A stretch of DNA of 64,000 nucleotides. Source: Tubulanus polymorphus. Taxonomy: Eukaryota; Animalia; Nemertea. How positions within the stretch are numbered: position 1 is the first letter of the stretch; every line of letters begins with the position of its first letter. The translations under genes were made by a program, and so were the position numbers. The stretch spans positions 1,302,001 through 1,366,000 of the forward strand of contig NC_134034.1 in the NCBI RefSeq assembly GCF_964204645.1, given 5' to 3'. Below the pieces are notes generated by a model that saw only the letters and a list, made by a program, of their open reading frames with translations, was not told the origin of the DNA and searched no databases. Below, one piece after another: positions 3,471 to 53,500 of this stretch.

Positions 3471-4776
3471 TGTATGACGTTTTATTTGAAAAACGTAAAT
3501 TCTGTTCAGTGCCAAATTCTGGAAGCTAGATTACGCAATTCCTCAACGAGAAAAATATGTGCCATTTTTACTAGAAATATCTTCAAATGTACAATAGCCC
3601 TGAACCCTATAAGCCCTGTAACTATTTTCCGAAAATGTAAATACCAGTAAAAGTTTTATTTCTGGTATATACCAGTTAGTGTGATTGTCAGTTCACTTCA
3701 TCATTTATAGTGTACAATGTTAGAATATTACTTAGACAAGCCGCATGCTATCGAGTGGATTACCTGCGAGGTCAGAACCAAGTGCAGAGTCTACAGTTAC
3801 CTTTATATTGTATTATTAGTGTCTAGTATTGTAAAATTGATAATTAATTAGCATCATGTATATTTATTGAATCTCAAACGTGAAGAATCTCAAAAAAGAA
3901 AACGCTAGGAAATCATAGGTAAATTCATGCGTAGAGAGTGCTTATACTGTTTAAAAAACAAATGCCAAAATCTGCTAGGGGGGTCATTCATTTATTACGT
4001 ACGCATTAGGGGAGGGGGAGTGGGTCAGTGCAATTGCGTACTGTAATGCTTAATGTGTATGAAAAGATGGCCGATTCAAATTTTATGCGTACGTAATAAA
4101 TGAATGACCCCTAGGGCAAATCCTGAAGTTCAGGTCGACAATATGAATGAACCTTTCGTTCACTGATCCTGGTATCAACACGTGTGGAACTGGGTGCGTG
4201 TTGATGTTGTTGTTTAACGACTGTTAAGCAGCTAATTAACATATTACTACAAGTAGTTCATATATCTAGTCTCAGTGTGTATATAAGACTGTTCAATGTT
4301 CTTGTAAAACTTCACCAAAAAAGAAAATGAGTAAAAGTTTTAAAAGCACGATAGAAATAGGTTTAGGAAATGTCGGATAATTCGCTTAGTTTCGACTGGC
4401 ATTCGTAGTTTTCTCTCAATCTGATTCTATGACAGAGTTGAAACATTGCGAAGGAAGTTCATTATTAACCTCAAAATGCAAATTCGACAAAGAGGTTAAG
4501 TTTCACTCTAGTCAAATTGAAAATAGCTTCGCTTTCCAATGTTTTAAATCTAGAACTGTCGAACTGGATCCGTGATCCATAAACAACGAACTAAAATGTA
4601 ACAAAAAAAAGCGCGTTTATTTTATATTATATTTTATTGATGCTCTACACAAAAATCGTCAGGAAATTCTATCAATTTTACACCGGAGATGATTTTCATT
4701 TTTGAAATATCGAAGTTTGTTGTAATATGATGTATTTATACTATAAACAAATTTGTAAAGTTCCGGCTATATGTGT

Positions 4777-4926
<150 letters not shown>

Positions 4927-5746
4927 CTATACCTAATGAAATTTATAGTTATTGTGTATTATAATAATACGTGTAAACCGTATATTTTTTCTCTCGATTT
5001 TTCTATCAAATTTGAATCGCATCTTTTTGAAATTGATTTACATCGCTACGAAATGAGATGGATAGATTTTGATATCGAGAGCCGCGCCCGGGCCAACTTC
5101 GGTTATCTAGGAGTTATCGGTGAAACCAAATGTCAGTTAGTCGGAACTATATTCCGGAAATGAAATTCAGTTATCAGTTTTGACCACTAGTCGCGACTTG
5201 ATACGAAAACCGAATTTGGCCCTGTTTGTGAATTGGCCCTGTTTGTTTTCATGTGTGAATTTAAAAATCTCGGAAAAAAATTCTAAATTCAAAAGATTCA
5301 AAAAAAATTCCATATTTAAAGAGAATAATAAACACATCCTTTGCCTGCAAATTTACGAGTTACAAAGTTATGTTATTTGTTTTTTGAGGATTGCTCCGTG
5401 GAATGAAGGGGGAACGAACCCTGGTAATGGAGGATATGGGAAACAAGTGACTGGCAATGAGGTTCATCATTGATCTTCGTACAAGCAAAAAAGGCCCGCG
5501 GAGTGGGAGCACTTTTACCACCAAAGACGATCCTTAATTTAAGACACTTGAGTTCAACTCTTTTTGTGAAACTGGTGTTTCTTGTCTGAAAGTGGAAATG
5601 ACTGTATTTGATTCATTCTTGAAATTTTATAATTTGATTTTTTAAAAGTAGCCTACATGTGGCCGCTCAGGCATAGACTGTGAAACAAGTATCAATAATT
5701 CGAAGCCGCTGAGGACTGTACAAAAACGCACTGCGCTGGCTTACCC

Positions 5747-51305: not shown

Positions 51306-52204
51306 GCTTTAAACTAAGTATAGCACAGGCACATTTAATTCATGTTGAAAAATAGCGCAGAATTCACCGTTTGAAAACAACCTGTCAGTTTTAGCCGAGA
51401 TAAAATGTCAATTATAATCAGTGACAGCCGCGTCAGAATCAGATCGGGAAATATTGAAAATATTCCTGGCTAGAATATCAACTGGTGACGCAGTTAGTTA
51501 AACTCATGGGGTACATGTGGCTGTCAGTGCCGTGTCACCTACAGTCACCTGAAATATTCTATATCTGTATATCGTGATATAGTGAAATATATACTTATTA
51601 TTGAAATTATAAACGAATTCTATTTTCATTCTGTTTGTCTGAAGCTATATACCTGCGGGGTTATAACGTGGAACGGTATCTCGTTAGATATGGGGAGTTT
51701 TAGGGCCCGGGTGGAAGGGACAATACGATGGTGACTGTCTCTTTCCAATTTGGGAAAGCGGAAAAATCAAGCGTGTGAAATATTTTTGGAAAAACTTCGG
51801 AATTTCAAATCCACGTAACTGTTGGGAACTATTCGAAAATACCTGAGCGGATAGGCCGTTCCTTTCAGCATTTTCAAAATTACAATCATTCGGGACTTAA
51901 GCTAAAAATTGTCTTTCTTTTGACCAGCCAGTGGCGCCACGTAGCGTCGCTATTGATTACCATTAGTCGTATTCTTTTGTGAATATAAAAATGAAATCTT
52001 AACTGAAAAATCGCCATATATTCAAAACACATTGTTTCGGTATTTTCTTTATGAAATATTTGTCCTAAATTTTAGGAGTATAGTTTGATATAACGAAAAT
52101 ACTCAGATCAATGTTAATATTGATATATTTATGATTTAATTCAAACACCGGTAAGATAACATCCGGGTCAGTCATATATATAAAATGGCGGATGTTACGT
52201 AAGC

Positions 52205-53314
52205 ATACTTACCTGGCACAGAGGTCCACCGTGATCTGGACCATAGTCCATGCAAAATTCGGCCACATAAAACCAATTAGTCAAAATAAAATCCAAACAA
52301 TTCTAAACGAACATAACATAAATTGGGCTCAAATATGGGGAGACATTTATCATCCAATAACTGAGAATAAATTAGGGGATATGCAATGGAGGTTTCTACA
52401 CGATACCCTAGCTACAGCAACTAAACTCGTGACATGGCAAGTTTCTAACGACCCTACCTGTAAAATATGCGGCCGTGCAGCCACTAATACGCATGTCATA
52501 ATTGAATGTCCGGCAGCTGTAAGACTTTTTACTAGATTTCAAACGATAATAGCTCAGGTAGCAGAACAACCAGCCCTCTTAACTAAACGTACAATTTGTT
52601 TTGGTTTTTCTAAACAAGCGATCATAAATCCACACAGTAGGCGTATATGTAACTATTTGATAACGGTCTTGAAATGGACACTGTATAAGAATCATCGCAA
52701 GGCATGCGCAGGAGAAACTGAACTAGATATGAAAAATTATGCTCGTAATTTTATAGCCAAACGATTGAAACAGGAGATTACGGCCAGGAAAAATATTAAT
52801 GTTTGGACTCAAAATGAAACACTGATCAGATGCAACGGAAATAATTACTTTATAAATGAAATAGCACTCAGTACGATTAATGATATTTTGTAAGGCCAGA
52901 AAAGAGCGTTTAGGTTTCTGTAAATAGCAATTAAATCGTTTTATACATACTATACATGTGACTGTGAATGATGACTTGATATTTCTATACTAGACAAAAG
53001 TATTCCTATTTTGTAAATATAAAGAATAATTTGTGTCATTACGGATAATGTGTAAATATTGGAAAGAATTAAACGATGTATGTATGATGTGTAGTGAAAT
53101 GTTCCAGTTAATGCAGTTTGAATTGTCTTCTTAATATACATATACGACTGTTACTAACCAGTGTTATGAATAACGTTTAAATCGAATTGAAAAGAATTAA
53201 ATATACATTTATGATTGCTTGGAATATGATGTAAATACCTCCAGTCCCCCACCTGACTCCAGTGGGTGTGATGTAGTTGTTATGGAGCCTTCCTTCTGTA
53301 AAATAAAGTTTATA

Positions 53315-53360
<46 letters not shown>

Positions 53361-53500
53361 ACCGTGATCTGGAAGGCGGTGCCTCTATGGCGAGGCCTGT
53401 CATTGCACTAAGACTGGTTGACCCATACGATCTCCCCAAATGTGGGAGACTCGGGTGTGCAATTTCTGGTAGTGGGGGACTGCGTACGCGCTATCCCCTC
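52205..53500 (+). ncRNA. U1: U1 spliceosomal snRNA gene interrupted by a retrotransposon (U1 nt 1-36 at 52205-52240; remainder 53374-~53500 after the duplicated 53359-53373)
   Basis: 5' end ATACTTACCTGG; stem-loop I with loop GATCTGGAAG; loop II ATTGCACT (U1A site); stem-loop III CCCCAAATGTGGG; Sm site AATTTCTGG; stem-loop IV GGGGACTGCGTACGCGCTATCCCC. Reconstructed length is about 163 nt. Confidence 0.95.
52241..53358 (+). mobile_element. 5'-truncated non-LTR retrotransposon (L1/Tx1-like), ~1.1 kb, inserted in U1
   Basis: Open frame to the stop at 52893 encodes an ORF2 C-terminus (W..IY...K.GDMQWRFLH..L.T...CKICG....THVIIEC, a CCHC zinc knuckle, then NYLITVLKWTLYK). It is followed by a 3' UTR, AATAAA at 53302, A41 at 53318-53358 and a perfect 15-bp TSD ccaccgtgatctgga (52226-52240 and 53359-53373). 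Confidence 0.92.

Follow-up and report, generated by a model that had tools for sequence, protein, structure and literature searches.

A truncated L1/Tx1-group LINE in a U1 snRNA gene of Tubulanus polymorphus, from a family found repeatedly just past the start of U1, U4 and U5 genes

The interrupted U1 gene and the LINE family A1

A U1 small nuclear RNA (snRNA) gene on the plus strand of the Tubulanus polymorphus contig NC_134034.1 is interrupted by a 5'-truncated long interspersed nuclear element (LINE) of a family here called A1. Coordinates without a prefix are positions in the analysed stretch of this contig, 64,000 nt in length (the window). The inserted segment totals 1,118 bp and lies sense to U1, as read from its C-terminal part of open reading frame 2 (ORF2), CCHC zinc knuckle, AATAAA signal and A41 tail (Table 1). 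A preliminary description of the window had reported a complete U1 gene split by a sense element of this length, and this was confirmed to the base: removal of one copy of the target-site duplication (TSD) restored a U1 of 163 nt, with three differences from an intact paralogue in the alignment. The 3' part of the gene scored 91.2 bits against an Rfam cut-off of 69.5. The description had also given an unbroken ORF2 C-terminus of about 217 codons with a CCHC knuckle; 216 codons plus a stop were found, with the knuckle at 52459-52509. The AATAAA, the pure A41 tail and the perfect 15-bp TSD equal to U1 nt 22-36 were all read in the letters as described. The upstream proximal sequence element (PSE)-like box and TATA box are the same as in the other 19 U1 genes of the genome, indicating that the split gene was formerly real and functional. 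We infer a bottom-strand nick between 52225 and 52226 (U1 nt 21/22).

The search of the species' own genome (268 Mb, 77 contigs) yielded about 47 matches. The window copy was 99.5% identical to a full-length copy (L078, C3:13562300-13568400), which encodes an ORF1 of 342 aa and an ORF2 of 1,271 aa; the window copy itself is without ORF1, the endonuclease domain and the RVT_1 core of the reverse transcriptase (RT) domain. Three copies with 98-100% identity keep the frame open across 716 upstream codons in their loci. In the full-length A1 ORF2, Pfam identified Exo_endo_phos (residues 9-219), RVT_1 (518-740) and zf-RVT (1085-1149), so that an N-terminal apurinic/apyrimidinic endonuclease (APE) domain, a reverse transcriptase and a C-terminal Cys-His motif, the features of the L1 group, are all present. 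The nearest solved protein was human L1 ORF2p (phmmer, E = 1.6e-74, residues 7-870), covering endonuclease and RT. A CCHC-type knuckle, CX2CX4HX4C, was spotted by eye in A1 ORF1, in which Pfam found no domain and a homologue search found no homologue. A sister family, A2, shares 72-73% ORF identity with A1, and the 3'-tail motif is common to both.

Among the copies, the hallmarks of target-primed reverse transcription (TPRT) were found: poly(A), many 5' truncation points, and TSDs of 0-16 bp or target deletions. The window copy is a recent, 5'-truncated, non-autonomous TPRT insertion. Judged by its sequence, A1 is a young LINE of the APE, RT and zf-RVT type in the L1/Tx1 group, an assignment that takes Tx1 and L1 proper together. 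The young Tx1/L1-like LINE of the preliminary description was thus upheld by the TPRT insertion, the L1/Tx1-group domains and the 99.5% identity to a full-length copy.

From the letters alone we infer a candidate role of the 3'-tail motif in recognition by the RT; the predicted fold of a hairpin in this motif was no better than that of shuffled sequences (z = -0.72). No retrocopies of the truncated unit of U1 nt 1-36 plus tail were found in the search of the species' own genome. Reads of a second individual, taken at 99% likeness, covered the unique flanks at a depth of 0-3x, with no joints, and were cut at the poly(A). A search of sequencing runs gave no RNA run that covers the locus. The window also holds a tRNA gene (36055-36127, minus strand; Rfam, 65 bits), with no relation to the LINE.

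Table 1. Features of the interrupted U1 locus in the window, and 3' junctions of A-family insertions in three snRNA genes (slash, junction)
Feature	Position	Strand	Remarks
PSE-like promoter box of the U1 gene, AAACACCGGT	52143..52152	+	Read from letters; box kept at -59 in U1 genes
CACCG core of the PSE-like box	52146-52150	+	Exactly 80 bp 5' of the insertion nick
U1 TATA box	52175..52182	+	51 bp 5' of the nick
U1 snRNA gene, 5' fragment, nt 1-36	52205..52240	+	Contains the 5'-splice-site recognition sequence; exact ATACTTACCTGGCAC match and alignment to intact paralogue
Left TSD copy, 15 bp, U1 nt 22-36, ccaccgtgatctgga	52226..52240	+	Perfect match to right copy
LINE family A1 body, 5'-truncated	52241..53317	+	Full-length element positions 4537-5607
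ORF2 C-terminal part, open 216 codons + stop	52243..52893	+	zf-RVT (Pfam) matches homologous residues of longer copies
CCHC zinc knuckle CKICGRAATNTHVIIEC, CX2CX7HX4C	52459-52509	+	Inside the ORF2 C-terminus
3'-tail motif CCCCCACCTGACTCCAGTGGGTG...ATGGAGC	53246..53290	+	Conserved across subfamilies A1, A2 and A3; candidate RT recognition element
Polyadenylation signal AATAAA	53302..53307	+	Read from letters
Poly(A) tail, pure, 41 A	53318..53358	+	Read from letters
Right TSD copy, 15 bp, ccaccgtgatctgga	53359..53373	+	Perfect match to 52226-52240
U1 snRNA gene, 3' fragment, nt 22-163	53359..53500	+	Rfam U1, 91.2 bits
U1, 3' junction	nt 21/22		...CACAGAGGT/CCACCG
U4, 3' junction	nt 21/22		...GGCGGTAC/CATAGTC
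U5, 3' junction	nt 23/24		...CTTCAACC/GCGTTT

Insertion sites in snRNA genes, and relatives of A1 elsewhere

The genome contains 20 U1 genes with an intact 5' end. A second U1 gene, at C10:1832303-1833565, is interrupted by an A2 element whose tail of 38 A is followed by CCACCGTG, giving a 3' junction identical to that of the window locus. The A2 copy has a TSD of 16 bp and is truncated at A2:4923 (15 bp and A1:4537 in the window), and the U1 variant also differs. The two loci could in principle descend from one original U1 insertion that spread by duplication or gene conversion among paralogues, given that the U1 genes, which form a multigene family, are dispersed over a single contig and have conserved flanks. 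However, the elements are only about 72% identical in their ORF, against 83-90% for the U1 flanks, and the truncation points, poly(A) lengths, TSD lengths and U1 variants all differ. The poly(A) tails of both elements are long and pure. A common origin of the two interruptions was rejected, with next to no probability left to it.

Only two canonical A1 5' ends are present in the assembly, and in front of each stands U1 sequence that ends at the 5' junction of this U1 site (site 1). At C3:18324364, the order is a 9-bp TSD (GACATATCG), U1 nt 1-37 beginning at U1 +1, the A1 5' end, the element, poly(A) and the second TSD copy. At C3:13562598, nt 11-38 of another U1 variant, ending in GATCTGGA as at the site-1 5' junction, run into the A1 5' region. 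One of the leaders matches the rare GATCTGAAA variant of U1, which is also present at the interrupted gene C10:1832303. Because the full-length copies carry U1 leaders, one of them from +1, U1-resident masters appear to have been transcribed from the U1 promoter. These sequences are read most simply if full-length insertions at the U1 site served as source copies, with transcripts that began at the U1 promoter and ended at the polyadenylation signal of the element. Template switching of the RT onto U1 snRNA, as in human U6/L1 chimeras, would offer another origin for the leaders; switching onto snRNAs is documented for L1 and has been proposed for the heads of SINEU elements (PMC4494074). We consider it improbable here, since both leaders stop at U1 nt 36-38, the site-1 5' junction, and not at the snRNA 3' end, and since one of them is the rare variant of C10:1832303.

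Two extant insertions of different subfamilies and two source copies deduced from the leaders bring the independent uses of the U1 site to at least four. In the A2 copy inside U1, GCGTTTAAA, the first bases of the U5 3' flank, lies between two A runs, from which it follows that the source of this copy sat in a U5 gene. One A2 lineage has moved from U5 to U1, i.e., between snRNA gene types.

U1 is also disrupted by a different LINE, which, together with the two insertions above, brings the U1 genes knocked out by retroelements to 4 of 20. Family B, another L1/Tx1-type LINE, splits two more U1 genes in sense at nt 74/75 (L054, C10:2390000-2399999, minus; L055, C10:2098000-2104500, minus). One of these copies is 7.4 kb long with both ORFs open and the other is truncated to 3.9 kb. 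The full-length 5' end of family B carries the histone H4 5' untranslated region (UTR) and first 10 codons, and at another copy (L061) the H4 coding sequence comes after the element. A further locus (L057, C10:1047000-1053000), with an intact U1, degraded family-B 3' fragments and then a lone fragment of U1 nt 106-163, is an old, rearranged U1/LINE locus.

Targets other than U1 were read from the sequence after the poly(A) at about 27 independent 3' junctions of A-family copies. This sequence was mostly unrelated to U1, and about 70% of the copies lie outside snRNA sites. U5 was identified as the common 3' flank of one A1 and one A2 copy, and one A2 copy adjoins U4. A search for poly(A)-plus-target patterns gave two insertions in U1, four in U5 and one in U4, with none in reversed-pattern controls. 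All seven are in sense orientation, and one U5 insertion shows a target deletion of about 55 bp. With about 27 insertions, some 1e-5 would be expected by chance in the +21 to +24 intervals of the approximately 61 U1, U4 and U5 genes. Chance is excluded by the seven observed.

The best database relatives of A1 are only 31-38% identical to it, and 11 relatives were placed on contigs. Three of the 11 are in 5S rRNA genes, at a single site (poly(A) running into CCGGTTCTCGTCCGATC), and a fourth is in tRNA-Val(AAC), inserted at nt 20/21 and flanked by a TSD of 14 bp. Two more are in or beside U1: a full-length copy within the gene (nick at nt 25/26, 15-bp TSD) and a copy that adjoins U1 from about nt 23. 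These six belong to other organisms and are 31-35% identical to A1. The U1-resident relatives lie, in two cases, in U1 stem-loop I. In a FastTree of 53 ORF2 proteins with unlabelled reference rows, A1 fell within a clade of 20 rows (SH-like support 81) that includes the 5S, tRNA-Val and U1 relatives. Family B was placed far from A1. On an ENA contig (ERZ25067906, L098; 393-581 and 1153-1192), a full-length relative sits in a U1 gene about 570 bp 3' of a U2 gene, in a linked U2-U1 cluster, and its 5' UTR extends for only about 140 nt after the U1 leader.

The preliminary description had taken the U1 site for a genuine target, and in this it was right: an A2 sister has the same 3' junction, both full-length A1 copies carry U1 leaders, and relatives reside in U1 in other organisms. 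Its further proposal of a family specific for the U1 sequence did not hold, since only 2 of the approximately 27 junctions are in U1, with four in U5 and one in U4 at unrelated sequences. The description had named copies at unrelated sites as evidence that would overturn this proposal, and most of the other copies do lie at sites other than U1.

A strictly U1-specific family, in which the APE endonuclease reads U1 stem-loop I and non-U1 copies are rare accidents, would account for the identical U1 3' junction in two subfamilies, for the U1 leaders on both full-length copies and for the two relatives in other organisms that are in U1 within 5 nt of the homologous site. It is very hard to reconcile with the low share of U1 among the independent 3' junctions, with U5 and U4 sites that have no sequence likeness to the U1 site, and with the A2 lineage that went from U5 to U1. 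The identities furthermore argue against the U4, U5 and dispersed copies being a different, recombinant element. We accordingly regard such a family as very improbable.

Several further sequences resemble snRNA targets or recur beside A-family copies. In the A1 3' UTR, ACGTTTAAATC (window 53163-53176) has 10 bases identical to the stretch of U5 that lies immediately 3' of the insertion site there, perhaps left by an old read-through from an ancestor that resided in U5. The canonical A1 5' end, ATTTACCGTGATCTGGAAGGCTGG (L078 358-381, 5' UTR), resembles U1 nt 24-44, and in the 47 bp before it (L078 311-357) are two copies of ATCAACCGCAAC, resembling the U5 site TCAACC/GC; these stretches could be older captured leaders or PSE-like boxes. 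Three copies of subfamily A3 (L082, C11:12888650; L088, C3:2179220; L089, C2:30328830) have a common 3' flank, GAGTAATCAGACAAGATCGGTCTGATTACTC, which marks either a further target that was hit repeatedly or a composite unit that was duplicated.

Two tandem arrays also contain A-family sequence. One A1 copy occupies a spacer position in a U2 array that repeats about every 1.8 kb (L068 and L002, C7:13991500-14000656). Its poly(A) is followed by GATCAAAG, of 8 nt and equal to U2 nt 25-32, and the rest has no match to the array; this copy, which may be a rearranged U2 hit or a chance occurrence, was left unscored. The U2 promoter is without a CACCG box at -59. In a U4 array (C2:9495536-9501419), each repeat holds an old A-family tail fragment about 650 bp 3' of U4, which seems to be an ancient insertion amplified together with the array.

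Distance from the promoter and the choice of target

The U1, U4 and U5 genes have a common promoter layout, in which a PSE-like (A/C)CACCG(G/T) lies near -58 and the TATA box near -29. In U1, U1, U5 and U4, respectively, the nick was 80, 81, 80 and 80 bp away from CACCG, and in the snRNA insertions it was 51, 52, 51 and 49 bp away from TATA. No common motif at the U1, U4 and U5 nicks was visible on comparing the target sequences. Among the non-snRNA copies, only three have a clean TSD: L006 (A1), L012 (A2, in a 59-bp satellite) and the full-length L078 copy. A TSD search for further scorable non-snRNA insertions gave no more clean cases. L006 and L012 have the same 10-mer, CGCACCTATC, with its CACC exactly at -80, in flanks that are otherwise unrelated. 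The A elements thus show what is expected of a position-specific integrator, a constant promoter distance with unrelated local sequence, with one exception at -92.

The best explanation overall, which we hold to be quite probable, is that a 5'-truncated A1 copy entered a working U1 gene, that A1 and A2 prefer +21 to +23 of U1, U4 and U5 and that the family uses the U1 promoter. In this scheme, a dead-on-arrival A1 copy entered the U1 gene by TPRT, with a nick in the template strand at U1 nt 21/22, reverse transcription of the poly(A) RNA and then cleavage of the other strand 15 bp downstream. A1 and A2 prefer positions +21 to +23 of the RNA polymerase II (Pol II) snRNA genes U1, U4 and U5, always in sense, 80 bp past CACCG and about 50 bp past TATA. 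In the favoured mechanism, the site would be measured from the promoter, with proteins of the element or a promoter-bound host complex (SNAPc/TBP type) positioning the endonuclease, which would then not read the U1 sequence. A full-length copy at the snRNA position would be transcribed from the U1 start site, giving the family a promoter, for which the retrocopies with a U1 leader are indirect evidence.

A promoter-measured site is favoured because the three local target sequences are unrelated. By analogy with TRE5-A and Ty3 at RNA polymerase III (Pol III) genes, we give about even chances to an integration site that is set from the promoter in this way. The more specific proposal is a LINE lineage with a molecular ruler that runs from the PSE-like CACCG, directly or via SNAPc/TBP, nicks 80 bp further on at +21 to +23 and so captures a Pol II snRNA promoter; this we advance tentatively, at slightly less than even probability.

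Alternatively, the endonuclease or another domain of the element may have several local specificities for sequence or structure, the equal promoter distance being due to coincidence or to selection for sites just past the start. Sequence-specific APE endonucleases are established in the target-specific LINEs Tx1L and R1Bm (PMC8869645, PMC1919474), and relatives of A1 have fixed sites within genes that lack an upstream PSE, namely those for tRNA-Val and 5S rRNA. On the other hand, the three nicks have no visible motif in common; counted from the start site they agree to within 3 nt, and each is the same 80 bp away from CACCG; and two unrelated non-snRNA targets have CACC at -80. Several local specificities, the main rival, are on balance unlikely. 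They are kept alive by the relatives in other organisms, whose U1 cuts lie within 5 nt of the homologous position.

This last observation is one of several that weigh against a site measured from the promoter, as it also fits recognition of the conserved U1 stem-loop I. The target site of the L078 copy has a TATA at -52 and its CACC at -92, and five other copies are without a TSD and are unscorable for distance. Since U1, U4 and U5 have a common layout, an 80-bp rule is inseparable from a rule anchored at the transcription start site or TATA box, or from three sequence specificities, save via the two non-snRNA sites. Copy numbers are small. As for the use of the U1 promoter, this assembly contains no full-length copy inside a U1 gene. 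Where the intact full-length copy has landed, Rfam at relaxed E-values gave no convincing sign of an RNA gene.

Comparison with known elements and implications

Small-RNA genes are known targets of the Tx1 clade, with Keno in U2, Mutsu in 5S rRNA and Dewa in tRNA arrays (PMC4494074, PMC3706591). Kojima (2015) lists U2, U5, 5S, satellites, microsatellites and transposons as Tx1 targets. Like A1, Keno, Mutsu and Dewa are APE-type LINEs with poly(A) that lie in sense at a fixed site in multicopy small-RNA genes (PMC4494074, PMC3706591), and A1 has relatives in 5S rRNA and tRNA genes, as have Mutsu and Dewa. With seven insertions in U1, U4 and U5 and clade-mates in U1, 5S rRNA and tRNA-Val, the A elements show a habit that is typical of Tx1 without defining the clade. 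By this analogy, the behaviour of the A1 group is that known for Mutsu, Dewa and Keno. In contrast, these three are described with one target each, whereas A1 and A2 use three snRNA genes, at one position relative to the promoter, and many dispersed sites. No U1- or U4-targeting LINE was described in the full-text literature searched, a search that had Repbase and Dfam outside its scope.

The logic favoured for A1 is that of TRE5-A of Dictyostelium and of yeast Ty3 and Ty1, in which the distance from a transcription complex bound at the promoter, and not the local sequence, determines the site (PMC3159450, PMC5911963). However, these elements integrate upstream of Pol III genes and spare them, whereas A1 and A2 land inside Pol II snRNA genes and destroy them. 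R2 in 28S rDNA and other co-transcribed site-specific LINEs use the promoter of the target gene (PMC4494074), and the A1 retrocopies carry a U1 leader from +1. R2 differs in its restriction-like endonuclease, its single target and its self-cleaving processing, whereas A1 progeny retain the leader.

The crocodilian SINEU elements, with U1- or U2-derived heads and mobilised by Tx1 elements, consist of a U1 5' fragment, a Tx1-type tail and poly(A) (PMC4494074), and the window locus has the same architecture (U1 nt 1-36 plus 1.1 kb). The heads of SINEU are attributed to template switching, whereas the junction in the window is that of a TSD-flanked insertion in a promoter-bearing gene. Dada-U1 elements resemble A1 in their use of one U1 site in one orientation (PMC3706591). 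They are, however, DDE DNA transposons with a 6-bp TSD and a different U1 site, and their mechanism is unrelated to that of A1. Family B is like A1 in being of L1/Tx1 type, in splitting U1 in sense and in borrowing a host promoter. It is unlike A1 in its ORF2 (31% identical), in its U1 site (nt 74/75) and in its home target, the H4 coding sequence.

A LINE dwelling in small-RNA genes is thus of a known kind; what would be new is the use of several snRNA types at one promoter-relative position, together with use of the U1 promoter. To our knowledge, the endonuclease reads the target sequence in nearly all known site-specific LINEs, and we know of promoter tethering only for elements next to Pol III genes. 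The use of three unrelated sequences, all equally far from a Pol II snRNA promoter, would suggest tethering to the promoter or its complex. If true, this LINE lineage would be the first at Pol II genes to be promoter-anchored and position-specific. Site-specific LINEs are natural models for programmable, RNA-templated gene insertion. With the insertions described here, U1 and U4 join the small-RNA genes that LINEs have colonised. The window locus shows how a U1 5' leader fuses to a LINE tail, which is the architecture of snRNA-headed short interspersed nuclear elements (SINEs), and the proposed use of the U1 site would, if true, provide a natural route to U1-headed SINEs.

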